Of a stretch of DNA of 64,000 bases, positions 10,621-63,400 are shown one piece after another. The stretch's first letter is position 1; each line of letters begins with the position of its first letter. The DNA comes from Bugula neritina (lineage: Eukaryota; Animalia; Bryozoa): assembly GCA_964035545.1 (NCBI GenBank), contig OZ037772.1, positions 1-64,000 of the forward strand. The letters run 5' to 3'. Position numbers and translations under genes: made by a program. Below the pieces are notes generated by a model. The model made no database searches and had not been told where the DNA came from. It was given only the letters and a program-made list of their open reading frames with translations.

Positions 10621-10622
10621 CA

Positions 10623-15596: not shown

Positions 15597-15761
15597 TTCC
15601 AGCCGGGCTTAACAACCACGCTGCCCAGCCTTTTCGTACGCTGACGTTGTCAAAGGCAGACGCATCCAAACTCAATCCACGGACATCTAAGCTTGAACGC
15701 TGAGTATGATTACAAATGCCAGGTTCTCAGGTAAGCTTGCTTTGACCTAACATTCCCACTC

Positions 15762-16832
15762 ATGGAATCAGGTCTACCATCAGTTGGTTCTGATTTAATC
15801 GCCCTAATTGAATTACAACTACTGGGGACTGAGTCTTACGTGAAAGGCGACGAGAACATAACAATGGCCGATGATCTACTAGATCTGAAGCTTGACACTA
15901 TGTCTCTCAGTCAGTCTACACGCCACGACACAGTCCCTCGAGTGTCGTCTAAAAAGATGTATGACTCTCAGACTAGGAACAGTCGGTTGTCATCAGAATT
16001 ATGGTGTAAAGATCACACTCGATCTAACAATAATTCTGCTCTTTTAGATATCACTCTCTCTCCTCTTCCCCGTGACACACAACTATTGGAGATGGCTTGG
16101 GATGAGGAACCTGCCCCCGTCACACTCCTTGAAGTACTTTTAAACCAGTCATGCTGGGTTACCCCGGACACGGAAGCACTTATTCAAGAATATAAGGGCG
16201 ATGACCAATGCACCACCTGCCACTGGTGCCAACTCTATTTCACCACCCCTCGCAGACTCAGGGTTCACGTCCCCCAACATTATGTCACCACCTTTTGTCC
16301 CTGTGGTAAATATAGTTATTACAGGGACTACATCCTCCGTCACCAACGGACCATGATTTGTCACATTGGACATCTCTATGAAGTTGATGAACATTCTTTC
16401 CCACACTTCCTTGATCTCATCCGACCCTTCATATCAGACCCGACTCGCTATGAACGGCTGCGTCAGGAGTTCCCCACACCTAGGGCCATCACACAGGAAC
16501 CCTGCCCCAAACCCCCCCCCCGGATATAAAAGACCACCTACGCCCCATTCATCACCCCCCCCGCACGCACAGTGCCCCGTCCCGACTCCATACCCAGAGT
16601 CGTGCTGCGACGCATCGAAGTGCCCCAGCGATGGCGTCCCTCTCCTCCTGTTTCTCCAAAATCCTCCCGTAAACGACGTTGGCCATCTTCGTCTCCCAAC
16701 CGACACTCTGCCCCCGCCTGGAACTTGAGAAAAGCTGAAGAACGGATACGGGAACTAGAGAAAGAAGTGCAGAGGTTAGCGCCAAGAATATCTGCCACGC
16801 CTCCAAACTCCGGGCTCTCTCTGCCTCTGTAG
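15762..16832 (+). CDS. Extra retroelement ORF3: tandem C2H2 zinc fingers, Pro/basic region, coiled coil (frameshifted at C-runs)
   Basis: CHWC-x12-H-x3-H and CPC-x12-H motifs in ORF 15762-16529. Overlapping ORFs continue to RKRR and LRKAEERIRELEKEVQRL. Lies between integrase and the PPT. Confidence 0.65.
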
Positions 16833-29914: not shown

Positions 29915-30877
29915 ATGGGAAACTATAGTTCAGCATACGAGGAGATCCTGCCATGTGATAACGAGACAGTTCTCTGCTATCAGCCATTCAATGAGATTTA
30001 CGTCGGAATCAACTGCCTCTCCATACTTCTGAACATTCTCCATCTGCTCATACTGTATGATATGAAGGAGCTGAAGACTACCAAATACTTCTGGGTTCTG
30101 ATAAACATCAGTTTTACTGACATTACCACCAACATTATCCTCGTAGTATACTTAAACTGTGACATTAGACATTTAATTCTTCAACTTCCTGTCACTGCCT
30201 CTTACTGGACGTTTAAAGCAATAGGAAACTTGACTGGATATGCTATTATGTTGAGATTTAATGTGTTTCTGGTTGCCAGTGTTGAGAAGTACGTAGGTGT
30301 ATGTAGACCATACAGCTACAGTACACATGTGCTCATAGTCAACCTGAAGAGTTTCACTGTATTTCTATATGTTCTAGCTTTCTTGTTGAAAGCAATTGGC
30401 AGCTTGGTTATAGCACATCCACTGTGTCAGGCTTCACTAAAGGTTCAGATAGCTGAGAAGACTCTGACAGGCTCCTTAGTAGGTAGTCTGTATGTAGTGA
30501 CAGTCCTCACTCTCTCCATACTAATCACAGTGTTGTTGGTGAAAGTGTGGAGAAAACTTAGAGAAATGGTAAGCAGCAATGCTGCCAATAACAGGGTCCT
30601 TATGGCAGCAAGCAAATACATCATTTTGATATACGTCATCTATCAGTCCTCGCTCATCTCTACAGTCATGTTTGTAATCTGTACAATACTGAAGGTCTCT
30701 CCTCTAATAACAGACACAGTAGAAGCTGTTGGTGCTGTGCTAACCTCACTTTATAGTATTGTCAATATCCCTCTGTTTGCTTTCTTTCACCCTAAATATC
30801 TCAGTGTAGTTCGAAGTCATTTGAAACTGAAAAGATTCAACAAAGTCTCCCCAATGAATGGTGGACAGAGAGCTTGA
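29915..30877 (+). CDS. Single-exon rhodopsin-like 7TM GPCR (orphan, chemoreceptor-like)
   Basis: 320 aa with seven hydrophobic segments; TM1 N, TM2 N-I-S-x-x-D, TM3 SVEKYVGVCRP (DRY-like), TM7 NIPLFAFFHPKY. Confidence 0.85.
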   Translation: MGNYSSAYEEILPCDNETVLCYQPFNEIYVGINCLSILLNILHLLILYDMKELKTTKYFWVLINISFTDITTNIILVVYLNCDIRHLILQLPVTASYWTFKAIGNLTGYAIMLRFNVFLVASVEKYVGVCRPYSYSTHVLIVNLKSFTVFLYVLAFLLKAIGSLVIAHPLCQASLKVQIAEKTLTGSLVGSLYVVTVLTLSILITVLLVKVWRKLREMVSSNAANNRVLMAASKYIILIYVIYQSSLISTVMFVICTILKVSPLITDTVEAVGAVLTSLYSIVNIPLFAFFHPKYLSVVRSHLKLKRFNKVSPMNGGQRA

Positions 30878-34700: not shown

Positions 34701-36534
34701 AACTCTACACTATCAAAAGTTAGACCACAGAGAGATATAGAGTATAGAAAGAGTTAGACCACAGAGAGATATAGAGTATAGAAAGAGTTGACCATAGAGA
34801 GATATAGAGTATAGAAAGAGTTAGACCACAGAGAAATATAGAGTATAGAACTAGTTAGACCACAGAGAGGTATAAAGTATAGAAAGAGTTAGACCATAGA
34901 GAGATATAGAGTATAGAAAGAGTTAGACCATAGAGAAATATAGAGTATAGAAAGAGTTAGACCATAGAGAGATATAGAATATAGAAAGAGTTAGACCACA
35001 GAGAAATATAGAGTATAGAAAGAGTTAGACCATAGAGAGAAATTATATAGAGTATAGAAAGAGTTAGACCATAGAGAGATATAAAGTATAGAAAGAGTTA
35101 GACCATAGAGAGGTATAGAGTATAGAAAGATGTGGATTGTAGAAATAGATTTAATGGTATTCTAGAAATAGATGCACTAAAAGCAGATGAACTACATAAA
35201 GAGCTGTAGATTATCATAGAGTATAGAACTTATCATGAACCAATTAGAGAGAGTTATAGGGAGCATTTCTCACCTGTATACTACCAAGTTTACCAGTGCC
35301 CAGGTAAGCTAGTTTCTCCACTAGAGGCCCTGGGTTGACTGCTATGACACCATTCTTGTTCATTCTGGTGTCAAGGGTGGTGAGCTCTTTAAGTTCAGGA
35401 TCGTACAAGAAGACATATATTTTGGAATGGCACGCTATGATCAGCTTGTTGTCTAGGAATCTATAATTATAACACTATGTCAGTCAAACTTGGAGTAAAC
35501 TATCTACTACTTAGTTCAGCAGATTATTCTAGTTTACTTTTTTATTTAATTAAATTTTGTTGTTTGCTGCTTAGTTTAAACAATCAAATGGTAGTATTTG
35601 GTCTCATTACAACTGATCTTGCTCCTCAATGAATTCAACTGATCTATATCATATACACCAATACAATTATTGCAGTAACTTAATAGAAGACAACTCTAAA
35701 AGTATGAATTACTTTATGTTTGCGACTGGGCCTGCAGTTTTGAAGTTAATTCTCCTTCTTTCTGTTTTAGTTTTGCAGTCGAATATTACCACAGTGCACT
35801 GACAGCCAAACGATGATCCTGCTAGGGCTACAAGGTTTGACCTTCTTAGCATCTCAGCTATTCTAATTTCTCCAATACCTGCCAAGACATGTTATTCTAT
35901 AAATAACTCTTTTCAATACAAGATATTATATGAATAACTCTTTTCAATACGAAATTTGTTAATCTATAAATAACTCTAACTCTAACAAACAAGTGACTTC
36001 AACCAATGAGAAGACAACTCAGCATGCTCTATTAAACATGACAGCAAGATTTACCAACACTTTAGTTTATGGAATTCATGTAAGAAACACACTTTCAGAA
36101 AAACTACACAAAGAACTTTAAAATTTTCTTGGTTCAATAAAATATTATCTTGGAAATAAATTAAATGCTGTTTTCTACATCACTATTGTAGTCTTTGGTA
36201 ATATCGAATATTTTAAAGATTCGAGGAAATATTCGGCAGATAAAATGAGCAAAGAATAAAACACATCGTAGCGACAATCTCGAATGTTTATTGGCTCACA
36301 TCACTGGAGGGCTGAGATACCTCTATCAAACCTAAACTCTATTTTCTCAACTCTCAACATGCTACATTTAATATCTGAATGAGCTGATGAATAGTATCTC
36401 TTACCAATGTCTTTAGCTGGTATAAATAGTCCTTGCTCTAACCTATCTACATGGAACACTCGGAATCCTTCACTGCCGCAAGTTGTGAACATGGTTGACT
36501 CTCGGTTGAATCGGACATGTTTAACTTGCCTCAT
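31741..36534 (-). CDS. WDR45: WD repeat phosphoinositide-interacting protein 4 (WIPI4, ATG18 family PROPPIN)
   Basis: Phase-compatible exons 36405-36534, 35713-35878, 35274-35460, 34192-34321, 33867-34000, 32597-32754, 31741-31867. Motifs EMLRRSNLVAL, ATASEHGTIIRLF, ELRRG, SDKGTVHIFGLKD, FTVPAE, AVCLDGTYHKY recall WIPI4 more than WIPI3. Confidence 0.9.
32867..32946. repeat. 80-bp spacer-less palindrome in a WDR45 intron
   Basis: AACAGTCAAAATAAATTTCATAATCTAT...ATAGATTATGAAATTTATTTTGACTGTT, one mismatch. Confidence 0.9.
33107..33442. mobile_element. PIF/Harbinger-like MITE
   Basis: TTA TSD; ~65-bp near-perfect TIR starting GCCTAGGGCCACACGGTGCGTATTTTCGCATGCG. Confidence 0.88.
34718..35130. repeat. 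34-bp minisatellite in a WDR45 intron
   Basis: AGTTAGACCAYAGAGAGATATAGAGTATAGAAAG, about 12 copies. Confidence 0.92.
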
Positions 36535-38061
36535 GCTCTATGGAATATATAATATACAAATATAAGCTGTGTAATAGTATTATTAGTAATGTTTAAAGTG
36601 GCTCACTCATGAGGTTGGTGTTTGAGTATAGTGGATTTTACAATTTAATTATTAAATAATAATATTTATTAAATAAAAATATTCATAAAGGAAGTCATCT
36701 GCCTCTATAGATGATCATGATGAGACATGAGTGGATTGAAAATCTTTAGAAAGAACATGACTTCCTACTGCTATATTCCTAGATTTACTACGCTTGCCCT
36801 GAGTTTGAGGGTATATGAGGACACACCCAGTGTCAGAACAGCTGAGGCTATGTAATATTATCTTAATATTATAAATCGAAACTATTTGACTTGATCCTAA
36901 TAGTTTGTAGTGTAGCTAGTAGTAAAAGTTTTTATAGAAAAGGTACATTTTAATTAGTCAAAAAGCAAATATACCTAATTGATAATTAAAATAAAAGCTT
37001 CATTAGCTTTATGGGTTCAACTTCCAGCTCTACAAACTTTCTGAGGATCGAAGAAAACATCAGTTTATTATAACTTTATATACCACAATGACAGCCATGT
37101 GCTTCTGGGTAGCAACTTAGTTAATATATAAACAAAATGCTAAAATTTAAAAGTAGGAAATGTAATATTATTATATCAGTGGCACTAGCAGATATATTAA
37201 TATCGGCACATTGACTTTTATCTTAAAACCCAAAACTTTAGTCAGCCTTACCATTCTCAAGCAGGCTACTCAAACAATTATAGTGAGAATTCAGAGATCT
37301 CAGGCAATGAAACCAGAAAGAGGCTATGTACTCACCACAAATGTTGAGTTTTAGTTCTATACTAGCAATATTAGTGATGAAGTTGGAAGGCAAACTCTCT
37401 TGGAAGTTAAAAGTACACTAGCAACTGATGAGAGACTTTCACTGAGAATGTCACTGGTTATGTAACTTCACAAACACGTGTTATATAATCCTTTTATTCA
37501 CAGATGGCAGATGCAACAGCTATGTAATTTACTATTTATGGAAAGCTGAGTGCAAACAGCTTTTACTCCAAACAACAATAAGCTGGGCATTTCGTGCAAT
37601 GTTTACCTACTATTGGTGAAAAGCTATCAACAGTTCAAATGGTACCAACTTACGGCATAAATTAATGACTTGGTATTCAATAATGGAAGGGGTTTGGTTC
37701 TACTGTCAAACAAGAGAACTAAAAACCTTCCATTATCTCTAAATCCTCCACTAAGTTGCTACAAAGTCTCTTTACTATTGGAGTGGCTGAAGGCAGCTAA
37801 CTAACAGTTGGGTTAAAGAACTAATTGGCCTGTGTGCATACAGCTGGGGTGGCTAAAGGCATAAAGTTGGGATTCAACTCATACTGAGAAGACAACTACA
37901 AAAGTTACAACAAAAAATATTTTCCTGTCTCTAAAATATGGTGAGAGTGTAGGTTTATATGAAATAATATTCTACACTTTACAGATAATGGCATATGTCT
38001 ACTGTAGTATACCAATTCCTGTATTATAATCTACCCATAATATACTTCTGCACTGCATTAT

Positions 38062-38512
38062 TGTATTGGTATGCCACCCAGAAGTATTGGCAGGCAGCCA
38101 ATCATTAAAGCTTTCAAGCTTCAAAAGCTTTCACCAAAGCTACTATTAGCTGGCAGAGCTAGTTCATTCACTGTACTGCATGAGTCAGTGTATCATGATC
38201 AAACCGCCATATTTACACACTTTGTATGAACAAACTATCGGTTTCGGTATTGTGATGGCTAAGATTTTTATCCACGCATCAATATTGTAAGTTTATTAGA
38301 ATTACAATAGTTCATGTCAATTTTTTGGTTCTGTAATATTCATAGTGTTCCTCTGAATTTTGATTTATATTGTGACTACTTATTTATACAATTTCTAATG
38401 TTTCCCATTTTATAGGGTACGATTTGACAGTTAATAAACTCGAAAACCTGTTGCCAAGTTGGCTAGTAGTTAAAGCATATCTTGCAACCAAACACAAACA
38501 CAAACCGATACA
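38062..38512 (+). repeat. BEL 5' LTR containing a GT-AG intron (38287-38415)
   Basis: GTAAGT donor, CTAAT branch-like site at 38395, TTTCCCATTTTATAG acceptor, AATAAA at 38433. Confidence 0.95.
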
Positions 38513-38540
38513 GTACCAATATTGATGCGTGGATAAAAAT
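38513..38540 (+). promoter_or_regulatory. Non-tRNA primer-binding site complementary to the spliced LTR junction (putative self-primer site)
   Basis: GTACCAATATTGATGCGTGGATAAAAAT is the reverse complement of 38264-38286 joined to 38416-38420. Confidence 0.7.
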
Positions 38541-38635
38541 TAGCAATTAAGAAAGCCAATGGATTAGTTACTGATTGTACTGACAATACTCTTATCACTG
38601 AACATCTTAGGAAATGTGTAGCTCTTTCAGAAAGT

Positions 38636-41600
38636 TTGGCAGATACCATAGGTTTTTCTGATTTATTATTAGAACTAGACGAAGTTATTTTATCTTTAGA
38701 TTATTGTATGTCTAAGTTTACTCTTATGTCAAGGGCTCAGTCACAGAGCATGAATTTCGAACACCGTGAATCTGATCCGTCCGTGGTCCGGTCCGGTCTC
38801 GCGGAAAGCGGTATGAGTGGGGGTTCACCTCCAGACGGCGCGAGTCATGCACCGACTATGGTCGCGTCGAGTCGGTTGTTTCCTCCTAGATCACACCCTA
38901 GCACACATGAGGCTACTCTTGCACCAAATCCAGGTATCACAGCAAGTGGTAGTGATAGGCAGGTACTACGGGAAGATCACACATCGGGTGAAGCTTTGGC
39001 GTCAAATCCAGGTGTCATAGCAAGTACCAATGTCAGAGATGTTCGTTCTTCTACATTCTCAGTACGTGATCTACATGGTAGTCCTGATCGTGCAGCTCAT
39101 TCTGAATCTTTAATTCGCGGTGCAACTTCCTCGGTTGTCAATGCATATGATAGCTACCCTAATGGAACTAGTCAAATAAGTTATGACTCTAGACATACAG
39201 GTGGAAATAACTTCAATTCATCTATACATAAAACTCATTCACAACCCAAGCCATTTAACGGCACCAGATACCATTGGCCGGAATTTAGGTCAGTATGGCT
39301 AAGATATGCCACTATGTTTTACGATGATGTCGATAGGGCTTGTGAATTAAAAAAATTTCTCACAGGCGAAGCTCTGGAGATGGTTCAGCCAATCTTCGCA
39401 ACTCAGCCTCAAGCTTACGAGAGAATGATGTGTAGATTAGAAGAGGTCTACAATGATCCTAGCATGAGTGTGCAAGCAGTCTTCAACAATCTACAAGAAC
39501 TAAAGCCAGTAAAGGAAGGAGATGCACGAGAACTCGTCAAAATGGCCAATGCAGTGGAAAGCTCGTACAGCCAACTCGGTGAAGTGGGACTTTTGCAAAC
39601 TGTTACGCTGCCACAAGTCGATACTCTTGCAAACCTATTACCTACAAGCATTAGACGGGACTGGGATAGACACTTTCACTCACTTACTCACGAGGAGAGA
39701 ATCAAGCCATTCCCACACCTTATGAGGTTTCTAGAGCAGGAACGGCAGATAGCCCTCAGACGCATAGAAACCGTAAACCCGCAGTCCTCCAGTATGCATA
39801 AACAGAAGGTGAAAGCGTTCCACGCTGAAAGTAGTGGCCCAAAGTCTAGTAGTAACAGGTCTACTAATAATAGCAAAATCATTGATAGTGAGAATTACTG
39901 TTTTATTCATCGCAGTGAGCGCCATTGTCTTGTTGAGTGCAGAAATTTCTTGGCGTTGTCTGTAGATGAAAGATACAAGTTAATAAAAACTAATTCTCTA
40001 TGTGTTAGGTGCTTGGGTGCCCATGAGCCTAAGCGCTGTCCAAATTTCCGAACCCTTTGTTCAGTCTGTGATAAAACAACCCACCATGTATTATTGTGCA
40101 TCAAATCAGCTGAAACTAATACACATACCAATTGTAATACCAACAAGAATAAAGTAAAGGCTGATCAAATTAAGCACAAGAGTAACGAGAATTCTGAAGC
40201 GTCTGCTGTTAGCACCACGGTCCGTGTGTCTCCCAATCATGGAGCGCACAATCATCCAGGAAATGCTACAGTATTTGCCATTCAGCAGGCCCAAGTAGTG
40301 GGTACATCTCATACAGCTATTATATTCTTTGACGGCGGATCCAATGCTTCATTCATATCGGAGAGAGCCGCTAAAGCGTGGGGTGCGCGACAAATAGATA
40401 AGGTGAATTTAGAAATGAACACACTTGGTGAACATGAAGTTAGCGAAACTTCTACTATTTACGAAGTAAAGTTACAAACTCCAAAGGGAAAGACCTTTAC
40501 GATTTTAGCTTACAGTCTTCGGAAACTCACAGGGGCTATCAACAAGCCACTTGATGCAAACATCCTCGGATCTCTGTTCCCAAAAGTAGACACTAGCAAG
40601 CTATTGAAGAAGACGGGACCTATCGACCTGCTAATGGGTAACGATCTTCTTGGATTGCATCCAAGACACCAAGTTGATCAAGCAGGACCGCACCTCTATG
40701 TATATTCCGGACCCTTTGGACTGTGTGTGCAGGGATCACACCCTGCCCTTAGCAACATTTCTACACTTCCATCCTCATCTTTCCATGTACAGGCTACCAT
40801 GATGCATGCGAAGTTGGATGAGCGTCTCGAGCCTCATTGGGAATTTAATAAGAAAATTCATTCTTATCTCACCAAGACGAAAAGTAGTTCTCTTGAAAGA
40901 TTTATTCAGGGTGAGGAGTTGGGCATAGAAATTCAGCCACAATGTGGAGCTTGCCAATGTGGAAAATGTCCAGTAGTGGGACATACCTATTCATTCAAAG
41001 AGGAGCAAGAACTTCAGATGATACGTTCTAACCTAGAATATGATGAGAGCAACGAAAGGTGGATTACAGCCTATCCATGGATAAGGGATCCTTCTACTCT
41101 ACCAAATAACTACCAAGCCGCATTGTCCACTTTACGCAACACTGAACGAACTCTCCGAAAGGACCCTGAATGGAGCAAGAGATACAATAACCAGATCGAA
41201 GACATGGTGGATCGCGGAGTAGCTCATAAACTGGATGAGGAGGAGCTGAGAAGTTGGAATGGACCTATTTACTATCTCAGCCATTTAGCCGTTCAGAATC
41301 CCAAATCAACATCAACACCAGTGCGAATAGTGTTCAATTCCAGCCAAACATACAAAGGAACATCCTTGAATTCTTGTTTAGCCAAAGGTCCAGATTCCTA
41401 TCTCAATGATTTGTTAGGCATTTTGCTTCGCTGGCGAGAGGAACCTGTAGCACTAGTAGCTGACATTAAGAAGATGTACAATTCCATATTTATAAGGGAG
41501 ATTGAGCAACACACTCATCGTTTCTTGTGGCGGAATATGGAAGACAGAAAGCCAGATGTCTATACTATTCTGAGGGTCAATATGGGGGATCGACCTGCTG

Positions 41601-44308
41601 CAGCAATTAGTACAGAGGCTCTTTACAAAACAGCAGATCTGTTTCACAAGGATTTTCCAAGAGTAGCAAAACTTTTGAAGAGGTCAACATATGTAGATGA
41701 TATAGTGGACTCTTTTCCACTCAAGGATGATGCCCTGCAGGTAGCGGCAGATACCGACTCTGTACTGAAGAGATGCGGATTCAAAGTTAAAGGTTGGCTC
41801 TTCAGTGGGGATAATAACAACAGTACAGATGCTGAAAATCAATATGAAGACTACAACACCCATGTACTTGGTGTTAAATGGATGCCCCAAACAGATGTTC
41901 TCTCATTCCCGGCTAGAATAAATTTTTCTGTCAAAAAGAAAGGAGCTTACACACAGCCAGATTTAACCATAGCCCAAATACCCGAATCAATTCCAGACAT
42001 ACTCACCCGAAGGATGGTATTAGAGCAGACAATGAAAATCTACGACCCACTTGGCATTCTCTCACCATTTACTTTGAAGGCAAAACTTCTGCTGAGAGAC
42101 ACATGGGAACAAAAACTTGAGTGGGATGATCAACTGCCTACAGAGATGAGCAGGAAATGGATACAAGTCTTTAGAGATATCTTCTCCCTTACTGAGCATC
42201 AATATCCTAGATGTCTGCGTCCTAAGGATGCTGTGGGATTACCTATCCTAGTGATATTCTCTGACGCCAGCGCAATAGCCTATGGATTCAGTGCATATGT
42301 GCGATGGAAAAGGCAGGATGGAACATACTGGTGTGCATTGATTTTAGCTAAATGTCGTATAGCACCCATGAAACAACAACTAAAGATTCCTCAACTAGAA
42401 CTCAATGCGGCCGTATTGTCAAAGAGAGGCAGACGAGTTATCGAGACTGAAATGCGCTATAAGTTTGAGAAAGTTTATCAGCTTATAGATTCTGAAACAG
42501 TGCTCAAGATGCTCCAAAAGAAGTCAACAAGGTTTCATGTTTACGAGGGTGTACGCGTTGGAGAAATTCAGGGAGCAACCAATGGAGATATGAGCTGCTG
42601 GCACTGGGTAAGTGGCAAGGAAAACACAGCAGATTGGCTTACAAGAGGGAAGCCTGTCAATGACATTGGACCTGCGAGTGAATGGTGGAGAGGCCCAAAT
42701 TTTCTCTATCTGCCTGAGGATCAGTGGGATATAAAATCGCCATCTGACTCGAATGAGCTTGTCTTTGGAGAGAAGAAAATAGTTTACACCGTCACTGCTT
42801 CAACAGAAGTCCAATCATTTGTTAAATATGAAAATTTCAGCAGTCTCAAGAGTCTAACATGGACAATAGCTCGAGTTCGCAACATCTTCAAGTACAAAAG
42901 TTTTAAGGGAATCCGATCTGATCTCATCACCGTGGAAGATCTACGGCAGACCAAACTCTACTTACTGAAGCAGGTACAACATACTATAGATTCCGAGTTG
43001 AACAAGATTAAAGGGAAATATACAAGACTTCACCCCATCAAGACAGAGAGTGGATTATGGATAGTAGGCAGTAGACTCCTAAGGCATAACCCCATGACAG
43101 CGATTAAAACGCACATGCAATCAATCCTTCCCACCACTCACTACTTTACCTACTTGGCAATGCGGCAGGCACATACAGATAGCTATCACCGTGGCCGAGA
43201 TGCAACACTCGCAAGATTCCGAGAAGAGTTTTGGACTATGCAGGGATCTAAGGTTGCTAGGGGCATAGTAACATCATGCCAAATGTGTCGGCTCAAACAA
43301 CCTCGCTTTACTGATCAACTGATGGGAAGTCTACCTACAGAACGACTAACGACCGGACCGCCGTTCAACAATGTAATGATAGATCTTTTTGGTCCGTATA
43401 TTGTGAGAGGAGAAAAACAGACTAGAACTTCGAGCAAAGCTTATGGAGTAATATTCACAGACATCAGTTCACGAGCAGCACACATCGAAGCAGTTTTCGG
43501 ATATGACAGTGATTCTTTCCTGTTGGCATTAACTCGATTCGTCAACATTCGTGGCTGGCCATCCAAGATTTATTCTGATCCTGGAACACAGTTAGCTGGA
43601 GCAGAAAAAGAACTCAAAGATATGTGGAGACGCATGGACAAAGGTTCTATCAAGAAAACCAGTGCAGAAAATGGGTTGCAATGGGAATTTGGACCCGGTG
43701 ACAGCCCCTGGTATCAGGGCGCTGCTGAATCACTCATAAAGGCTGTCAAGAGATGTTTCACATTTTCAATGAGCAACCGCCGACTTTCACCTACAGAATT
43801 TCTTACAATCTGCACTGAAGCTGCAAACACGCTAAATGAAAGGCCATTGGGATTACTGCCAGATTCAGACTCCGAGATCAACATATTAACACCTAACTGC
43901 CAACTTATTGGACGACCCTTCATCAAGAATCCTGGCAGCTGGAATAAAGACTACTCCTTAAGGGGGCGACTGGCTCTGGTAAATACAGTCTCAGATGACT
44001 TCTGGCGGAAGTGGACCGAATTGTATGCACCCACACTGATTCATCACCAAAAGTGGCATACCCCAAGACGAAACTTTCAGGTGGGAGATGTTGTAGTTGT
44101 TATGGATCCAAATCAACTGCGTAATCAGTATAAACTAGCTCGAGTACATCAAGTATATCCGAGCAAGGATGGCGTAGTAAGGAAAGTAGCCCTTTCCTAC
44201 AAAAACTATAAGGTAGCGGGGAAACTGAGGGACTATGTAGGCTGTAAAGACACTATCATAACCCGCAGCGTGCATAGGTTGGCTTTATTAACCGAAGTGA
44301 ACCCATAA
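38636..44308 (+). CDS. BEL/Pao gag-pol polyprotein (Gag, Cys/His knuckles, aspartic protease, RT, RNase H, integrase)
   Basis: 1890 aa; FNGTRYHWPEF, CFIH/CVRC/CSVC knuckles, FFDGGSNASF, RIVFNSS, YVDD, YDPLG, FSDAS, IPQLELNAA, DLFGP, SDPG, ESLIK, FWRKW. Frame is open from 38537; first ATG at 38708. Confidence 0.96.
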   Translation: MADTIGFSDLLLELDEVILSLDYCMSKFTLMSRAQSQSMNFEHRESDPSVVRSGLAESGMSGGSPPDGASHAPTMVASSRLFPPRSHPSTHEATLAPNPGITASGSDRQVLREDHTSGEALASNPGVIASTNVRDVRSSTFSVRDLHGSPDRAAHSESLIRGATSSVVNAYDSYPNGTSQISYDSRHTGGNNFNSSIHKTHSQPKPFNGTRYHWPEFRSVWLRYATMFYDDVDRACELKKFLTGEALEMVQPIFATQPQAYERMMCRLEEVYNDPSMSVQAVFNNLQELKPVKEGDARELVKMANAVESSYSQLGEVGLLQTVTLPQVDTLANLLPTSIRRDWDRHFHSLTHEERIKPFPHLMRFLEQERQIALRRIETVNPQSSSMHKQKVKAFHAESSGPKSSSNRSTNNSKIIDSENYCFIHRSERHCLVECRNFLALSVDERYKLIKTNSLCVRCLGAHEPKRCPNFRTLCSVCDKTTHHVLLCIKSAETNTHTNCNTNKNKVKADQIKHKSNENSEASAVSTTVRVSPNHGAHNHPGNATVFAIQQAQVVGTSHTAIIFFDGGSNASFISERAAKAWGARQIDKVNLEMNTLGEHEVSETSTIYEVKLQTPKGKTFTILAYSLRKLTGAINKPLDANILGSLFPKVDTSKLLKKTGPIDLLMGNDLLGLHPRHQVDQAGPHLYVYSGPFGLCVQGSHPALSNISTLPSSSFHVQATMMHAKLDERLEPHWEFNKKIHSYLTKTKSSSLERFIQGEELGIEIQPQCGACQCGKCPVVGHTYSFKEEQELQMIRSNLEYDESNERWITAYPWIRDPSTLPNNYQAALSTLRNTERTLRKDPEWSKRYNNQIEDMVDRGVAHKLDEEELRSWNGPIYYLSHLAVQNPKSTSTPVRIVFNSSQTYKGTSLNSCLAKGPDSYLNDLLGILLRWREEPVALVADIKKMYNSIFIREIEQHTHRFLWRNMEDRKPDVYTILRVNMGDRPAAAISTEALYKTADLFHKDFPRVAKLLKRSTYVDDIVDSFPLKDDALQVAADTDSVLKRCGFKVKGWLFSGDNNNSTDAENQYEDYNTHVLGVKWMPQTDVLSFPARINFSVKKKGAYTQPDLTIAQIPESIPDILTRRMVLEQTMKIYDPLGILSPFTLKAKLLLRDTWEQKLEWDDQLPTEMSRKWIQVFRDIFSLTEHQYPRCLRPKDAVGLPILVIFSDASAIAYGFSAYVRWKRQDGTYWCALILAKCRIAPMKQQLKIPQLELNAAVLSKRGRRVIETEMRYKFEKVYQLIDSETVLKMLQKKSTRFHVYEGVRVGEIQGATNGDMSCWHWVSGKENTADWLTRGKPVNDIGPASEWWRGPNFLYLPEDQWDIKSPSDSNELVFGEKKIVYTVTASTEVQSFVKYENFSSLKSLTWTIARVRNIFKYKSFKGIRSDLITVEDLRQTKLYLLKQVQHTIDSELNKIKGKYTRLHPIKTESGLWIVGSRLLRHNPMTAIKTHMQSILPTTHYFTYLAMRQAHTDSYHRGRDATLARFREEFWTMQGSKVARGIVTSCQMCRLKQPRFTDQLMGSLPTERLTTGPPFNNVMIDLFGPYIVRGEKQTRTSSKAYGVIFTDISSRAAHIEAVFGYDSDSFLLALTRFVNIRGWPSKIYSDPGTQLAGAEKELKDMWRRMDKGSIKKTSAENGLQWEFGPGDSPWYQGAAESLIKAVKRCFTFSMSNRRLSPTEFLTICTEAANTLNERPLGLLPDSDSEINILTPNCQLIGRPFIKNPGSWNKDYSLRGRLALVNTVSDDFWRKWTELYAPTLIHHQKWHTPRRNFQVGDVVVVMDPNQLRNQYKLARVHQVYPSKDGVVRKVALSYKNYKVAGKLRDYVGCKDTIITRSVHRLALLTEVNP

Positions 44309-44537
44309 ATGACTGATCTACTTTCTTGGCCGCGTGTACGCTCGTGTCGCTGGAGAGGTTTGCATTCAACCGTTTTTCGGGGGACGGGCTGGTGCGCGGA
44401 GGGGTCAGCGGATTGGTGCAAGAATTTCATGGTCTGTGACTGATCCTATTTTGTTTTGTTTGTTTTGTTTGTTTTGATTTACATAATTTATCAATATTTG
44501 TCAGAATAGTATCTGCCAAACAATTCGACCCCACCGA

Positions 44538-44988
44538 TGTATTGGTATGCCACCCAGAAGTATTGGCAGGCAGCCAATCATTAAAGCTTTCAAGCTTCAA
44601 AAGCTTTCACCAAAGCTACTATTAGCTGGCAGAGCTAGTTCATTCACTGTACTGCATGAGTCAGTGTATCATGATCAAACCGCCATATTTACACACTTTG
44701 TATGAACAAACTATCGGTTTCGGTATTGTGATGGCTAAGATTTTTATCCACGCATCAATATTGTAAGTTTATTAGAATTACAATAGTTCATGTCAATTTT
44801 TTGGTTCTGTAATATTCATAGTGTTCCTCTGAATTTTGATTTATATTGTGACTACTTATTTATACAATTTCTAATGTTTCCCATTTTATAGGGTACGATT
44901 TGACAGTTAATAAACTCGAAAACCTGTTGCCAAGTTGGCTAGTAGTTAAAGCATATCTTGCAACCAAACACAAACACAAACCGATACA
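44538..44988 (+). repeat. BEL 3' LTR (intron copy 44763-44891)
   Basis: Direct repeat of 38062-38512 followed by the ATTAT TSD. Confidence 0.95.
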
Positions 44989-45556
44989 ATTATGATTCAT
45001 ATGTTACATTTTAAATAATATTATATTGGTCTATTTTTGTAAATCGGTTCTATATTCTATTTATGCTGTAATATTAATGCGATTCTTACATTACATTCTA
45101 TGTTATTATATTATGTATGCTGTAATACAATTCTTGTATTGCATTCTATATTATATTATGTATGTTGTAATGCAATGTCCATATAATACATTATATATCA
45201 TAATAAAATTCTACTGTATTATATAATGATTGCCCTACATCCAGCCCACACTGTATGCAACAATTGAACTATAGTCTAAGTTATAATAAGGGGGGATATA
45301 GCTGTATTATATAATATATTATCCTAGTATTTGACAGCATTGTTCTATAACGTAGTACCATAATTTAATTATAATTGTATCATTATTATAATATGATATT
45401 ATATTGCATCATTATTACAATATGACATTATATTGTATCATTATTATAATATGATATTATATTGTATCACTGGGCTACAGTGTCCAATATGTAAGAATAT
45501 TTTGTATTTTTATTGTAAATATGACATAGTACACTTCAGAATATCCACTAGAGTTG

Positions 45557-45833
45557 TATGTGCTGATAACTCCCTTATCTCCAATAGAGTTGATTGTGCT
45601 GATAACTCCCTTATCTCCAATAGAGTTGATTGTGCTGATAACTCCCTTATCTCCAATAGAGTTGATTGTGCTGATAACTCCCTTATCTCCAATAGAGTTG
45701 ATTGTGCTGATAACTCCCTTATCTCCAATAGAGTTGATTGTGCTGATAACTCCCTTATCTCCAATAGAGTTGATTGTGCTGATAACTCCCTTATCTCCAA
45801 TAGAGTTGATTGTGCTGATAACTTCTTTATCTC
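45557..45833. repeat. 36-bp minisatellite
   Basis: TGTGCTGATAACTCCCTTATCTCCAATAGAGTTGAT, about 7.7 head-to-tail copies, no spacers. Confidence 0.95.
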
Positions 45834-48003
45834 TAATAAAGTTGTACAAAAACAGCATGTTATATTGTGTTTGGATCAATTTAAAAACATGCAAATATAA
45901 ACTATTTTTATAACTTAATAAAAAGTCAGTAAATCTTTAACTTGGAGATTGTATTTTGGAATTTTCTAAAACTTCCAGGGGAGGTAACACACCATGGCTT
46001 TAAATTTTGATTAATCAGAGTTTTGTTCTACTAACTCCAATAATTATTCATTATACTGTAAGTGCAGTCTTACTGCAAATACATGCTTCTGTAATATAGT
46101 AGTTGTTTACCAAGCTATTTTCTTAAAATTCTGAAATTTATGAGCTGTCAAAATGTTTGAATTATTTAAATAATATTTAGAATTTAATAAGTATACGTAG
46201 GACTAGTTTATTACTAAAGAAGATGAGGTAATGCTGTATTACATACACCTTGTAGTTTCTTATTAATAGGAGTATGTTCATTGGGTGATGGCACAGAGTC
46301 TGATTGGATGAAGCTGCACTGCCTTTGATACAGATAGCTGGGTATTGTTGTATTATTATGGTGTGGGCTACTGCAGCTATTCATAAAACCAGTTTATTAT
46401 AATAATATGTCACTTTAAAGTCTCAATTATTATTAGATCTGAGTCAGTAAATAGCTATTGCGAGAGCTTTCACAAATAGCTTTCTTTACACAATGGTTTT
46501 TGGAAAGCCGCCAAAAAGCCACTGCAACAGCATGTGTATAAATAAGGCATATGGAGGGTGGTTTTTAACTTTAATTCATGCATATGTGTGAAAAATAATT
46601 TTAGGTTCAAGTCTTTGAGGGCCACATGAATGTAGGCTGGGGGGGGGCACATCTGGCCCTGGGGCCGCCTAGTGGACAGCCCTTACTTTAAAGTGTCAAT
46701 TATCATTAGATCTGAGTGAGAGATTACAACAGATAGAGACAGTATAATAGTATGGATCTTTGAAAGAGGTTCCTGTAGGCCTTTCAACATCCTTTAGTAA
46801 ACAGCCTCAGTTTTATGTTCACTTTATTATGATTATTAAATTAGATCAGCATCTTTAGATTTGTGTGGACAGTAGGCTATTTATTTTATGACCCTTAATA
46901 AACAGGACTATAGACACTATCTATTTTATGTTTCAGTAGAGGTGAGATGACTACTTTGAGTTAATCATAAACAGAGATGACAAGTAAATGATATTGACTG
47001 CTGTGTACTTTTAGCAACTCTTTGTGAATCACATAACATTTTAGTTTGAGTGCATAATATAGCTTGTTCTCTTAGTTTATATTAACTTGAGTGGGTAAGG
47101 GGCCTTTGTTACATGTTTGCTAGTTAAATAAATGTCATTTCTGTAGTTACTATTGCTAAATGTACCCATACAAGTTCTGATAGTTAAGTTTTTGCAATTT
47201 TACACTTGATTCTATATGATGAAATGAATCAATTAATATGTGCTTGCAACATTGAGTAACATCTCCGTATTGTATATCAGCAGTGCTTATGTTATTACAT
47301 AATTGACGAATAAAATGTTATAGCTGAAGACTTTTGACACTTGGCTATAATACGCTGATTGTTGTTGTTAGATTGATTTATATTGGAGTTTTCATTCAAA
47401 TCTTGTCAAGTGCAGAATCTAGCAACTTTATTGACTAACCTTTAATAACCTGTTCCCTCTATGAGTCAGAATTAGTAAAAAATTTAAAAAAATTTAAGCG
47501 AAACATACCTATGCCTATATTATTATAATTTGCACTTTTTATATACATAAATAATAAGGAATTTCTGTTTAGTTTGGTAGCCTCCTATTAGAGCTAGACT
47601 AATATTATTAATATGACATCATGCAAACTGGTTGCATGATCCTACTTATTGACTGTAATAAATCATAGATAGGGCACCTGACCAGCAGTGTCAAGTTTAG
47701 AGAATACTTGATATTCATATGACATGGAGTTGAGATATGACCTTGGCTTAGTTGCTAGGTAACAGCTAAATAACAGTTGGCCATGCATGTTATTAAGAGT
47801 ATAATACTATGACAGAGTGCATACTATGTAATACATAACTACAATTTAATTGCTTGAAATCTCAAATACTTCAATAGAGTGAGAAATAAAAAGTTGCTTC
47901 ATTTATAGTATTCAAGTGCCGTTTCCATGACGATTCAACCAGCTGACCATCATAACCCTTCAGTGTGTCTATAATTACTTGATAATAAAAGAGTGTTTAA
48001 TTA

Positions 48004-48746
48004 GAGTATTATATATGAGTATATGAGTATATGAGTATTATATATGAGTATTATATATGTGTATTATATATTAGTATTATATATGTGTAATATATACTAG
48101 TATTATATATGAGTATTATATATGTGTATTATATATGAGTATTATATATGAGTATTATATATGAATATCATATATGAGTATAATATATGAGTATTATATA
48201 TGAGTAGTATATATGAGTAATATATATGAGTATTATATATGAGTATTATATATGAGTATTATATATGAATATTATATATGAGTATAATATATGAGTATTA
48301 TATATGTGTATTATATATTAGTATTATATATGAGTATTATATATGTGTATTATATATGAGTATTATATATGAGTATTATATATGAATATTATATATGAGT
48401 ATAATATATGAGTATTATATATGAATAGTATATATGAGTAATATATATGAGTATTATATATGAGTATTATATATGAATATTATATATGTGTATTATATAT
48501 AAGTATTATATATGGGTATTATATATGAGTATTATATATGAGTAATATATATGAATATTATATATGTGTATTATATATAAGTATTATATATGGGTATTAT
48601 ATATGAGTATAATATATGGGTATTATATATGAGTATAATATATGAGTATTATATATGTGTATTATAAATGAGTATAATATATGAGTATTATATATGAGTA
48701 TTATATATATGAGTATTATATATGAGTATTATATATGAGTATTATA
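48004..48746. repeat. 13-bp minisatellite (GAGTATTATATAT)
   Basis: Direct reading. Confidence 0.95.
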
Positions 48747-49405
48747 GACTTCTGTTTCCATCACTTCCATTTATGCAAATGAATGGGATAATGAATTTAT
48801 GGCTTAATCGGTTTGCATGAACTTAGGCTGTGGTTTTATTTCATTGATCTACTCTTTTCAAGCTGCATCGGTGATAGAATCAGTGATAGTGATCATTGAT
48901 CTTATTATGTGGTGATTTTTTTACCTGCAAGTGATTCAATACTAAAATTTCGTGCTCTTGCAAGAATATTAATGTAATAGTAGACTAACAGTACACAACT
49001 TGCTACAACAATATATACACACATATATATAGGCTGTATGCATGCATGCTATGGCACTCTATTAAAACACCTCTGCATGGTCCTTCAATTTAAACTTGTA
49101 AATTTATACAGTATTGTATTAACACTTTATACAGTATTGTATTAACACTTTATACAGTATTGTATTAACACTTTATACAGTATTGTATTAACTATCGATC
49201 AAAACAGTTCCCATTTCACAACAGGAAGTTTCCCCAAGAGTGATCACAGTTGCAATTATTCAAAATTTGAAATTGACGCAAAAAATCTTATTTCACAGAC
49301 TTTTAGCCAAAAGTTCAAAGGTCAAACCCTCAAGACCTATGGAATACCACCAGAAAGGAATCGGTGAGCTTTAAGGGAGCACTGTAGTAAATATAATACT
49401 ATCAA

Positions 49406-49944
49406 CTGTTAGGTGAGATACACTGTTAGGTGAGATATACTGTTAGGTGAGACATACTGTTAGGTGGGATATACTGTTAGGTGAGATATACTGTTAGGTG
49501 AGATACACTGTTAGGTGAGACATACTGTTAGGTGAGATACACTGTTAGGTGAGATATACTTTTAGGTGGGATATACTGTTAGCTGGGATATATTGTTAGG
49601 TGGGATATACTGTTAGGTGGGATATACTGTTAGGTGAGATATATTGTTAGGTGGGATATACTGTTAGGTGGGATATACTGTTAGGTGAGATATACTGTTA
49701 GGTGGGATATACTGTTAGGTGAGATATACTGTTAGGTGAGATATACTGTTAGGTGAGATATACTGTTAGGTGAGATATACTGTTAGGTGGGATATACTGC
49801 TAGGTGAGATATACTGTTAGATGGGATATACTGTTAGGTGAGATATACTGTTAGGTGGGATATACTGCTAGGTGGGATATACTGTTAGGTGAGATATACT
49901 GTTAGGTGGGATATACTGCTAGGTGGGATATACTGTTAGGTGAG
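49406..49944. repeat. 17-bp minisatellite (CTGTTAGGTGRGATATA)
   Basis: About 31 copies. Confidence 0.95.
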
Positions 49945-58891: not shown

Positions 58892-60460
58892 TCAAGACTC
58901 AGCTCGAGGTCGATCGCTGGCTGCCACTTCCTGTAGCCACATCTTGATGAAAGCGACGGCAGTGTTGAGTTGAGTCCAGTTGTATGCCTCTTCGCCCTCC
59001 ATGCGGGATCCATAGAGACTGTCTACGTACTGCAACAGATAGTAGAGAGTAACTCACCTGTATTGTATAGAGTATAGAGTAACTCACCTGTATTGTATAG
59101 AGTAGAGAGTAACTCACCTGTATTGTATAGAGTAGAGAGTAACTCACCTGTATTGTATAGAGTAGAGAGTAACTCACCTGTATTGTATAGAGTAGAGAGT
59201 GACTCACCTGTATTGTATAGAGTAGAGAGTAACTCACCTGTATTGTATAGAGTAGAGAGTAACTCACCTGTATTGTATAGAGTAGAGAGTAACTCACCTG
59301 TATTGTAGAGAGTAGAGAGTAACTCACCTGTATTGTAGAGAGCAGGTAAGACGGGTTCGCCATGATCAACACGTATATGAAGACGGGCAGGAAGTCGTCT
59401 GCTCCTGGAACAGACTTGGTGTGAGCCATCTTCAATAGGCCCATTATTGTATCCACACACTGGGAGACACACTACAACATACAAAGAGAGGCGATAAGGT
59501 TAGAGTTGCAGAGGTACACACATGGTGAGTCTAGAGTTGCAGAGGTACACACATGGTAAGGTTAGAGTTGCAGAGGTACACACATGGTAAGGTTAGAGTT
59601 GCAGAGGTACACACATGGTAAGGTTAGAGTTGCAGAGGTACACACATGGTAAGGTTAGAGTTGCAGAGGTACAGACATGGTGAGGTTAGAGTTACAGAGG
59701 TACACACATGGTAAGGTTAGAGTTGCAGAGGTACACACATGGTAAGGTTAGAGTTGCAGAGGTACACACATGGTGAGTCTAGAGTTGCAGAGGTACACAC
59801 ATGGTAAGGTTAGAGTTACAGAGGTACACACATGGTAAGGTTAGAGTTACAGAGGTACACACATGGTAAGGTTAGAGTTACAGAGGTACACACATGGTAA
59901 GGTTAGAGTTACAGAGGTACACACATGGTAAGGTTAGAGTTGCAGAGGTACACACATGGTAAGGTTAGAGTTGCAGAGGTACACACATGGTAAGGTTAGA
60001 GTTACAGAGGTACACACATGGTAAGGTTAGAGTTGCAGAGGTACACACATGGTAAGGTTAGAGTTACAGAGGTGCACACATGGTAAGGTTAGAGTTACAG
60101 AGGTACACACATAGTAAGGTTAGAGTTACAGAGGTACACACATGGTAAGGTTAGAGTTACAGAGGTACACACATGGTAAGGTTAGAGTTGCAGAGGTACA
60201 CACATGGTAAGGTTAGAGTTACAGAGGTACACACATGGTAAGGTTAGAGTTACAGAGGTACACACATAGTAAGGTTAGAGTTACAGAGGTACACACATGG
60301 TAAGGTTAGAGTTGCAGAGGTACAGACATGGTGTATGGAATGGCAGATATATACCTGAACTTTATCATGGGGCGTCTTAAAAGCGTTGATTTTGATGAGG
60401 TGGGCCTGGGCAGAGCTCCAGGGCGCCTCCAGGTGATAGACGGCCGGAATCTTCAACTTC
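58892..60460 (-). CDS. GAPVD1: GTPase-activating protein and VPS9 domain-containing protein 1, last three exons (VPS9 domain)
   Basis: Exons 60355-~60460 (LKIPAVYHLEAPWSSAQ...AFKTPHDKVQ), 59328-59471 (CVSQCVDTIMGLL...PGADDFLPVFIYVLIMANPSYLLSTIQ), 58892-59029 (YVDSLY...GEEAYNWTQLNTAVAFIK...TGA); matches the GAPVD1 C-terminus as I recall it. Confidence 0.9.
59041..59342 (-). repeat. 30-bp tandem repeat of an exon-end/splice-donor unit
   Basis: Ten copies of CTCTAYAATACAG|GTGAGTTACTCTCTACT on the minus strand. Confidence 0.95.
59496..60332. repeat. 31-bp minisatellite filling a GAPVD1 intron
   Basis: ATGGTAAGGTTAGAGTTRCAGAGGTACACAC, about 27 copies. Confidence 0.96.
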
Positions 60461-60483
60461 CTGTAAGATGCAATCATCATTAA

Positions 60484-63400
60484 ATAACATTATATTACTA
60501 CATTTATATACTAGTAACATTATATTACTACATTTATATACTAATAACATTATATTACTACAATTATATACTAATAACATTATATTACTACATTTATATA
60601 CTAATAACATTACATTACTACATTTATATACTAATAACATTATATTACCACATTTATATACTAGTAACATTATATTACTACATTTATATACTAATAACAT
60701 TATATTACTACATTTATATACTAGTAACATTATATTACTACATTTATATACTAATAACGTTATATTACTACATTTATATACTAGTAACATTATATTACTA
60801 CATTTATATACTAGTAACGTTATATTACTACATTTATATACTAATAACGTTATATTACTACATTTATATACTAATAACATTATATTACTACATTTATATA
60901 CTAATAACATTATATTACTACATTTATATACTAGTAACATTATATTACTACATTTATATACTAATAACATTATATTACTACATTTATATACTAGTAACAT
61001 TATATTACTACATTTATATACTAATAACATTATATTACTACATTTATATACTAGTAACATTATATTACTACATTTATATACTAATAACGTTATATTACTA
61101 CATTTATATACTAATAACATTATATTACTACATTTATATACTAGTAACATTATATTACTACATTTATATACTAGTAACATTATATTACTACATTTATATA
61201 CTAATAACGTTATATTACTACATTTATATACTAATAACATTATATTACTACATTTATATACTAATAACGTTATATTACTACATTTATATACTAATAACAT
61301 TATATTACTACATTTATATACTAGTAACATTATATTACTACATTTATATACTAGTAACATTATATTACTACATTTATATACTAATAACATTATATTACTA
61401 CATTTATATACTAATAACATTATATTACTACATTTATATACTAGTAACATTATATTACTACATTTATATACTAGTAACATTATATTACTACATTTATATA
61501 CTAGTAACATTATATTACTACATTTATATACTAATAACGTTATATTACTACATTTATATACTAATAACATTATATTACTACATTTATATACTAATAACAT
61601 TATATTACTACATTTATATACTAGTAACATTATATTACTACATTTATATACTAGTAACATTATATTACTACATTTATATACTAATAACGTTATATTACTA
61701 CATTTATATACTAGTAACATTACATTACTACATTTATATACTAATAACATTATATTACTACATTTATATACTAATAACGTTATATTACTACATTTATATA
61801 CTAATAACATTATATTACTACATTTATATACTAGTAACATTATATTACTACATTTATATACTAATAACGTTATATTACTACATTTATATACTAGTAACAT
61901 TATATTACTACATTTATATACTAATAACGTTATATTACTACATTTATATACTAATAACATTATATTACTACATTTATATACTAATAACATTATATTACTA
62001 CATTTATATACTAGTAACATTATATTACTACATTTATATACTAGTAACATTATATTACTACATTTATATATTAGTAACATTATATTACTACATTTATATA
62101 CTAATAACATTATATTACTACATTTATATACTAATAACATTATATTACTACATTTATATACTAGTAACATTATATTACTACATTTATATACTAGTAACAT
62201 TATATTACTACATTTATATACTAATAACGTTATATTACTACATTTATATACTAGTAACATTATATTACTACATTTATATACTAGTAACATTATATTACTA
62301 CATTTATATACTAATAACATTATATTACTACATTTATATACTAATAACATTATATTACTACATTTATATACTAATAACATTATATTACTACATTTATATA
62401 CTAGTAACATTATATTACTACATTTATATACTAGTAACATTATATTACTACATTTATATACTAGTAACATTATATTACTACATTTATATACTAGTAACAT
62501 TATATTACTACATTTATATACTAATAACATTATATTACTACATTTATATACTAATAACATTATATTACTACATTTATATACTAGTAACATTATATTACTA
62601 CATTTATATACTAGTAACATTATATTACTACATTTATATACTAGTAACATTATATTACTACATTTATATACTAGTAACATTATATTACTACATTTATATA
62701 CTAGTAACATTATATTACTACATTTATATACTAGTAACATTATATTACTACATTTATATACTAATAACATTATATTACTACATTTATATACTAATAACAT
62801 TATATTACTACATTTATATACTAATAGCGTTATATTACTACATTTATATACTAATAACATTATATTACTACATTTATATACTAGTAACATTATATTACTA
62901 CATTTATATACTAGTAACATTATATTACTACATTTATATACTAGTAACATTATATTACTACATTTATATACTAATAACATTATATTACTACATTTATATA
63001 CTAATAACATTATATTACTACATTTATATACTAATAACATTATATTACTACATTTATATACTAGTAACATTATATTACTACATTTATATACTAATAACAT
63101 TATATTACTACATTTATATACTAGTAACATTATATTACTACATATATATACTAGTAACATTATATTACTACATTTATATACTAATAACATTATATTACTA
63201 CATTTATATACTAATAACATTATATTACTACATTTATATACTAGTAACATTATATTACTACATTTATATACAAATAACATTATATTACTACATTTATATA
63301 CTAATAACATTATATTACTACATTTATATACTAGTAACATTATATTACTACATTTATATACTAATAACATTATATTACTACATTTATATACTAATAACAT

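Follow-up and report, generated by a model that had tools for sequence, protein, structure and literature searches.

A large group of BEL/Pao LTR retrotransposons, among them an element of the bryozoan Bugula neritina found in the window (the whole stretch of 64,000 nucleotides that was analyzed), carries next to its 5' LTR a primer-binding site (PBS) complementary to the junction that splicing of its own LTR would create. The anatomy of this arrangement, its conservation, the covariation of both halves of the complement with the PBS and the exact register at the LTR edge are shown by the sequences compared below. The reading that we consider likely makes the spliced LTR segment the minus-strand primer, i.e., a self-priming of the Tf1 type with a primer assembled by the spliceosome, where splicing, cut and priming are all inferred and there are no RNA data. 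The original prediction, that a PBS complementary to the element's own spliced LTR junction points to self-priming, is thus supported by comparative evidence and extended to a large clade, while splicing, the start site, the cut and the priming event remain inferences.

The element in the window

The element (Table 1) is a member of BEL/Pao (Belpaoviridae), as shown by its domain set together with the LTR and target-site duplication structure. Pfam matches along the gag-pol frame were Peptidase_A17 (PF05380, 4e-44), DUF5641 (PF18701, 3.5e-19), the gag domain DUF1759 (PF03564, 1.1e-8) and Integrase_H2C2 (PF17921, 6e-6). Membership of Ty3/gypsy (Tf1/sushi) was not met, the domains being BEL/Pao-specific and every homologue BEL/Pao. 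That the LTRs are identical and the ORF intact had been noted before and held (451 bp at 100% and a 1890-codon frame), and an intact, recently inserted BEL/Pao element is part of the best explanation. Neither further copies of the element nor solo LTRs were found in the 64-kb window, and the tRNA and Rfam scans detected no tRNA genes or Rfam families in it.

Table 1. Position of the element, its parts and the satellite arrays within the window.
Feature	Position	Strand	Details
Satellite	34718-35130		34-mer x12
Target-site duplication ATTAT, left copy	38057-38061	+	5 bp
BEL/Pao LTR retrotransposon	38062-44988	+	paired LTRs, target-site duplication, gag-pol frame
5' LTR	38062-38512	+	451 bp; TG...CA ends; identical to 3' LTR
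Exon-1 half of proposed primer	38264-38286	+	23 nt; complementary to 38518-38540
Spliceosomal-type intron within LTR	38287-38415	+	129 nt; GTAAGT donor; CTAAT; pyrimidine tract and TAG
Exon-2 half of proposed primer, GGTAC	38416-38420	+	proposed primer 3' end and cut site
Poly(A) signal AATAAA	38433-38438	+	17 nt after exon-2 start
U5 motif TGTTGCCAA	38449-38457	+	conserved across families; pairs with 38481-38489 in the predicted fold
Primer-binding site	38513-38540	+	28 nt from first internal base; exact complement of spliced junction
gag-pol single open frame	38636-44308	+	1890 codons; first ATG 38708; YVDD motif
C-rich tract GACCCCACCGA	44527-44537	+	adjoins 3' LTR where polypurine tract is expected
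3' LTR	44538-44988	+	451 bp; 100% identity to 5' LTR
Exon-1 half, 3' LTR copy	44740-44762
Intron, 3' LTR copy	44763-44891
GGTAC, 3' LTR copy	44892-44896
AATAAA, 3' LTR copy	44909-44914
Target-site duplication, right copy	44989-44993	+	5 bp
Satellite	45544-45844		36-mer x8; directly 3' of the element
Satellite	48004-48746		13-mer x57
Satellite	49405-49944		17-mer x32
Satellite	59495-60332		31-mer x27
Satellite	60483-64000		30-mer x117; runs off the window end

The primer-binding site and its split complement

The reverse complement of positions 38513-38540 equals LTR positions 38264-38286 plus 38416-38420, with no mismatch. The last base of GGTAC is the partner of the first post-LTR base, and it is therefore the proposed 3' end of the primer and the proposed cut site. 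In the unspliced sequence the contiguous complement is 24 nt long (38264-38287 vs. 38517-38540). This 24-mer is confined to these sites in the window and none of 100 shuffles contained a match, even at 3 mismatches; a pyrimidine tract and AG directly before GGTAC, downstream of the donor, turned up in 35 of 20,000 dinucleotide shuffles. The spliced junction and the PBS are predicted to fold into a 28-bp stem closing a 92-nt loop (-51.6 kcal/mol).

According to the ICTV (2021, PMC8742986), the PBS of BEL/Pao elements has 18 nt and is complementary to tRNA-Arg or tRNA-Gly of the host, and their polypurine tract measures ~10 nt. The PBS criterion is unmet here, with no TGG-type site adjoining the LTR either in the window or in the related families, the host tRNAs themselves being outside the search. 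In the window copy the first TGG is located 17 nt in, inside the self-complement. What had been claimed for this copy, i.e., the absence of a TGG-type tRNA PBS after the 5' LTR, the exact 28-nt complement of the junction, the 129-nt intron and the 24 contiguous nucleotides, held in full, with every coordinate. In the window copy 24 of the 28 nt pair unspliced, and the case for a dependence on splicing therefore rests mainly on the relatives.

The same layout in related families

The protein search returned 605 BEL/Pao homologues with the same domain set (best 67% identity), and we analyzed DNA from about 85-88 related loci (Logan and ENA contigs, 80 metagenome contigs, Watersipora subatra and two other eukaryote assemblies). 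The nearest relatives of the window element came from invertebrate-associated assemblies and a bryozoan genome; the W. subatra copy (L084) lies in the chromosome assembly GCA_963576615.1 (OY755162.1, ~20.44-20.47 Mb). The layout is shared by at least 17 distinct families, with 30-67% protein identity to the window element. Donor and acceptor are located in the LTR, the donor directly after the exon-1 complement and a pyrimidine tract with YAG (AAG in L023) directly before the exon-2 complement, with a poly(A) signal just past the acceptor in most families and a PBS that starts at the first post-LTR base. Many families have ACA at the LTR end followed directly by GTACCAA, and these first 7 nt are conserved and the tail is variable. 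Loci of this GTACCAA group for which LTR sequence was available have a single GGTAC per LTR, placed after a pyrimidine tract and AG, and upstream of it a GTAAGT donor; the bases before this donor complement the variable PBS tail.

An unbiased scan that asked only for a donor and an acceptor, with the complement of their junction farther downstream, found clean Watson-Crick duplexes at the LTR edge in many families and few false hits in ~450 kb of other sequence. Wherever two LTRs or target-site duplications fix the edge (the window, L021, L034, L069, L070 and L085-L088) the duplex begins at the first post-LTR base. The complement of the PBS measures 28 nt in the window and 9-16 nt in the relatives, mostly only after removal of the intron. 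Related families with a normal tRNA PBS and no conserved complementarity would have spoken against the original prediction; the opposite was found, the complementarity to the junction being kept.

Differing PBS tails coexist in a single sample (ERZ1740052: L004, L007, L009 and L012), which makes a shared host RNA primer a poor explanation. In one of these, L012, the LTRs (407-975 vs. 7596-8135) are only ~86% identical and the donor, acceptor, GGTAC and PBS are unchanged. The divergence of its LTRs may correspond to an old copy or to two variants assembled as one.

Covariation of both halves with the primer-binding site

Compensatory changes between PBS and junction in related BEL families had been put forward as a check, and they were found on both the exon-1 and the exon-2 sides (Table 2). 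On the exon-1 side, the ends TCAATATT, TCAATTTT, CAGTATTTT, TAATT and AATGA are matched by the PBS tails AATATTGA, AAAATTGA, AAAATACTG, AATTA and TCATT. On the exon-2 side the combinations with the PBS are GGTAC/GTACC, GGTTAC/GTAACC, GTTAC/GTAAC, GTCAC/GTGAC, GTTTTAC/GTAAAAC and ATCGAAT/ATTCGAT, to which TTTCAGAT/ATCTGAAA and CTTCAGAT/ATCTGAAG are added by L051 and L054, a pair that shows two compensatory changes. G:U pairs are present in L017, L019 and L023, and fit the expectation for RNA-RNA pairing.

Table 2. Junction halves and PBS in the window element and its relatives.
Family	Exon-1 end	Donor	Exon-2 start	PBS start
Window	TCAATATT	GTAAGT	GGTAC	GTACCAATATTGA
L003	TCAATTTT	GTAAGT	GGTAC	GTACCAAAATTGA
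L005	CAGTATTTT	GTAAGT	GGTAC	GTACCAAAATACTG
L009	TAATT	GTGAGT	GGTTAC	GTAACCAATTA
L019	AATAATT	GTAAGA	GTTAC	GTAACAATTATT
L057	AATGA	GTAAGT	GTTAC	GTAACTCATT
L021	TGTTTT	GTAAGT	GTCAC	GTGACAAAACA
L034	AAC	GTATGT	GTTTTAC	GTAAAACGTT
L051 (~30% identity)	AAGT		TTTCAGAT	ATCTGAAAACTT
L054 (~30% identity)	AAAT		CTTCAGAT	ATCTGAAGATTT
L055, L062	AGAA, AAGAA		ATCGAAT	ATTCGATTTCT(T)
L084 (predicted spliced junction)	...AAAATCTTGT		TACGAC
L085 (LTR 310 nt)	contiguous CAGTGTTTTAC			GTAAAACACTG, adjoining LTR
L070	contiguous CGGATTTCGAA			TTCGAAATCCG

The W. subatra copy is informative in a different way. Its exon-2 boundary lies between ...CTTGT and TAC, not before GTTAC, and yet splicing would still yield a sequence that complements the PBS (GTAACAAGATTTTG) over 14 nt without a mismatch. 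With the boundary shifted and the spliced complement intact, it is the spliced sequence that is conserved, not the arrangement of the DNA.

Anchored at the first post-LTR base, the duplexes between junction and PBS of the same family had a mean length of 12.4 nt vs. 2.9 nt across families, and in a permutation test 0 of 100,000 permutations reached the observed duplex sum. These figures are slightly conservative, because the L084 duplex entered the statistics as 13 nt, not 14 (its PBS start was set one base late). Without splicing, the best complement anchored at the LTR edge in the split families has only 5-8 nt. The exon-2 share of L086-L088 is 7 nt long and covaries (GTTGAGA, GTTTCAC and GTTCTAC vs. 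TCTCAAC, GTGAAAC and GTAGAAC), but with the best donors their exon-1 share amounts to only ~2 nt, which counts against the primer model.

A separate observation concerns L087 (positions 1540-1560), where exon 1 ends in ...GGTGAAACAG, followed by GTAAGA, and includes GTGAAAC, as the PBS does, so that it could pair with the exon-2 start GTTTCAC. A competing helix or one that bridges the splice sites are both possible.

The LTR intron and its signals

By their signals, A+T content and folding the intervening sequences look like ordinary spliceosomal introns, although their removal from the RNA is inferred. Across the 16 families scanned, the donor was GTAAGT in 13, GTGAGT in two and GTAAGA in one (L034, read separately, has GTATGT), and the acceptor was CAG or TAG with the exception of AAG in L023. 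In 12 of these 16 families a YTRAY motif precedes the 3' splice site by 8-45 nt; in the window the match is CTAAT (38395-38399), 17 nt before the 3' splice site. Intron lengths in the same 16 families go from 76 to 304 nt, and their A+T content is 66-78% vs. 55-65% in the adjoining exon-2/U5 sequence. Folding z-scores between -1.8 and +2.5 indicate no excess of structure, and the window intron (76% A+T) has nothing unusual in this respect (z = 0.1). A structured loop-out of the intron was considered as well and is unsupported, there being no closing stems or excess structure.

AATAAA or ATTAAA appears 5-45 nt past the exon-2 start in nearly all families, so early that the part of R downstream of the proposed cut must be short (~25-65 nt). 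From the position of AATAAA in the window the R/U5 boundary can be placed at ~38450-38465. Among the fetched loci we found no spliced plus-strand LTR contigs, and all strings matching a junction were the PBS on the opposite strand.

Relatives without the intron

Three nested families carry a PBS self-complement without an intron. In L085 and L070 (Table 2) it consists of 11 contiguous nucleotides matching a PBS that adjoins the LTR, and in L070 a TATA-like motif precedes the complement by 26 nt. A quick maximum-likelihood tree built from the RT-RNase H part of pol (41 rows, with broken frames as gaps or X) has split families on both sides of its deepest split, with the contiguous families (L085 with L069, and L070) nested among them. 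This placement indicates that the split state is old and that loss (or gain) of the intron has been recurrent.

Proposed mechanism

In the model that we propose, splicing of the 5' LTR intron would join ...CAUCAAUAUU to GGUAC, and the joined segment would pair with the PBS starting at the first base past U5. The RNA would then be cut after ...GGUAC, presumably by the RNase H of the element, by analogy with Tf1. From the new 3'-OH, synthesis would run through U5 and the little of R that lies between cut and poly(A) site, and the short strong-stop DNA made in this way would be transferred to the 3' R. The PBS adjoins the LTR, and for this reason ...ACA would be the exact end of the linear cDNA.

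For the intron to be inherited, one of two arrangements is needed, and they cannot be separated from sequence alone. In cis, the 5' intron would be spliced and the unspliced 3' LTR copy of R would be the template, copied after strand transfer. In trans, a spliced RNA would donate the primer to an unspliced genomic RNA. The requirement in cis, that of the two copies of the intron only the 5' one be spliced, is plausible but unsupported; its plausibility comes from the 3' donor not being cap-proximal and lying after a 6-kb exon, and from splicing past the stop codon, which should trigger nonsense-mediated decay.

The start site of the transcript had been predicted to lie upstream of 38264, and here the evidence is divided. 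The 23-nt exon-1 complement of the window suggests, by inference, a start at or upstream of 38264, and L003 retains a decayed remnant of a longer exon-1 complement. TATA-like motifs elsewhere suggest otherwise: in several split families they are found 30-42 nt upstream of the donor, inconsistently, and would imply a very short first exon. Inspection of TATA and Inr motifs gave predictions that were inconsistent between families. The 5' ends of contigs were rejected as a proxy for the start site; judging from where they begin (~55 nt before the LTR end), they fit breaks of the assembly graph at the repeated LTR.

A bolder version goes further, and we lean toward it by a modest margin. It holds that throughout a large and old BEL/Pao clade the primer would be assembled by the spliceosome, the intron in R acting as a switch such that only spliced RNA could form the duplex, and that the intron would be inherited through an unspliced R (the 3' R in cis or that of a partner RNA in trans). 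With the non-purine tract at the 3' LTR added, this version would mean that both priming steps of the clade depart from the textbook scheme for LTR elements.

The tract before the 3' LTR and the U5 motif

No polypurine tract was found upstream of the 3' LTR of the window element; in its place there is a C-rich motif conserved across the clade. This motif (CCCTCCGR) adjoins the 3' LTR in the window, L003, L008, L009, L013, L017, L021 and L084-L088, in the forms ...CCCTCCGG, ...CCCCTCCGA and, in the window, GACCCCACCGA, each immediately before the TG of the LTR and often preceded by GTCAA. It is not repeated elsewhere in the element. Perhaps plus-strand priming is also unusual in this clade.

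The U5 motif has the form TGTTGCC(A/G) in L003, L005, L006, L010/L035, L011, L041 and L054, and L010 and L035 have, directly ahead of the gag ATG, a GGCAACA with which it can pair. It might form a U5 stem, like the one that Tf1 needs, or serve as a downstream element of the poly(A) site. The leaders of L014, L015 and L016 (~100-300 nt upstream of gag) contain 2-3 tandem-like copies of CAAGTTGCCAGCCA, which share the core GTTGCCA of the U5 motif.

Surroundings of the element

The element is surrounded by repeat-rich, A+T-rich DNA with dense satellite arrays (Table 1). A second, degenerate retroelement lies in an island of 55% G+C at 9685-16529; among its several ORFs, the one at 13650-14867 has an integrase zinc-binding domain. 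At 29915-30877 there is an intron-less ORF of 320 codons, GPCR-like, with a weak match to 7tm_1; a 94% identical protein exists in a Logan assembly and others at 40-45% in JGI metagenomes, and it is probably a real host gene. Other ORFs of the window gave at most weak domain matches against Pfam, and the searches made with them returned no human sequence; mammals are not known to have BEL/Pao elements.

Comparison with known systems

The closest parallel is the self-priming of Tf1 and Tf2 of Schizosaccharomyces pombe and the Tf1/sushi group (Lin and Levin, 1998, cited in PMC5443660). Tf1/Tf2, Maggy, Skippy, Cft-1 and sushi-ichi are self-primed Ty3/gypsy elements, and in Tf1 the primer cut is made by RNase H. 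As in that group, the elements described here have no tRNA PBS, their own R segment complements the PBS next to the 5' LTR and the 3' end of the primer must come from a cut at the end of the duplex; the contiguous complement of L085 and L070 even has the same length as that of Tf1. The differences are that the clade belongs to BEL/Pao, not to the chromovirus branch of Ty3/gypsy, that in most of its families a spliceosomal intron splits the primer sequence, so that the full complement exists only in spliced RNA, and that location of the complement at the 5' end of the transcript, as in Tf1, has not been shown.

With canonical BEL/Pao elements the clade shares the gag-pol organization, Pfam domains, LTRs, the 5-bp target-site duplication and metazoan hosts; it differs in lacking both the tRNA PBS and the polypurine tract and in having a PBS that complements its own LTR junction. 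Splice donors inside R are known in HTLV-1, BLV and foamy viruses, which likewise have a functional 5' splice site in an LTR-derived leader. Their acceptor is outside the LTR, however; splicing gives them subgenomic mRNAs and plays no part in priming, for which a tRNA is used. Copia is primed by an internal fragment of the initiator tRNA. There, too, the 3' end of the primer is made by processing a longer RNA, but that RNA is a host tRNA.

The main survey of BEL/Pao (PMC3118150) does not mention primer sites. The original prediction, made from the sequence alone, named no described equivalent, and in the full-text literature searched (older subscription-only papers were outside its scope) we found no description of self-priming in BEL/Pao or of a primer split by an intron.

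Alternative explanations

The first alternative is self-priming without splicing, by pairing of the unspliced leader with the PBS. The 24 nt of the window would then leave a gap of 4 nt to the LTR, and in the other families the two halves would both be paired around a looped-out intron, forming a three-way junction. In its favor are the 24 contiguous nucleotides of the window and the presence of both halves in the unspliced RNA of every family. Against it, there would be no reason for a donor, a pyrimidine tract and YAG to be exactly at the edges of the complement in at least 17 families, and the introns lack the closing stems or excess structure of a loop-out. Moreover, the unspliced halves in the relatives are short, 2-11 nt for exon 1 and 3-8 nt for exon 2, and in L084 the position of the junction has moved and the spliced product has been kept. 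We regard this alternative as improbable.

Unlikely as well is that the duplex is real but not a primer, i.e., that it is a leader structure for translation, packaging, dimerization or choice of the poly(A) site and that a host RNA such as a tRNA fragment primes. Long-range pairings between U5 and leader are known in retroviral leaders, BEL/Pao is described by the ICTV as tRNA-primed (PMC8742986) and a host RNA primer is not excluded. Against this, the complement always starts at the very first post-LTR base, the position that defines the 3' end of the minus-strand primer, TGG-type sites next to the LTR are absent from all of these families, one sample contains families with different PBS tails and the intron-less relatives repeat the proven layout of Tf1.

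A chance match, or an artifact of assembly or duplication of one copy, could be argued from the pattern having been spotted by eye after the fact in a single copy in the window, but the shuffles given above for the 24-mer (0/100) and for the acceptor with GGTAC (35/20,000), and the fact that independent assemblies, one of them a bryozoan genome at chromosome level, show the pattern again and with covariation, all but exclude it.

Implications

What is new, on an interpretation that is likely and remains inferred, is self-priming in another superfamily with a primer assembled by splicing. So far, self-priming of the Tf1 type has been regarded as peculiar to a single branch of Ty3/gypsy. If our reading is true, there would be a large self-priming clade inside a third of the LTR-retrotransposon world, and annotation software for LTR elements that demands a tRNA PBS will mis-score its members. 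The replication of the clade would depend on host pre-mRNA splicing, with an exon-exon junction as the primer, a new link between RNA processing and reverse transcription. This would explain the persistence of an intron in a retroelement that is copied through RNA, and the efficiency of splicing would be predicted to control the rate of transposition.
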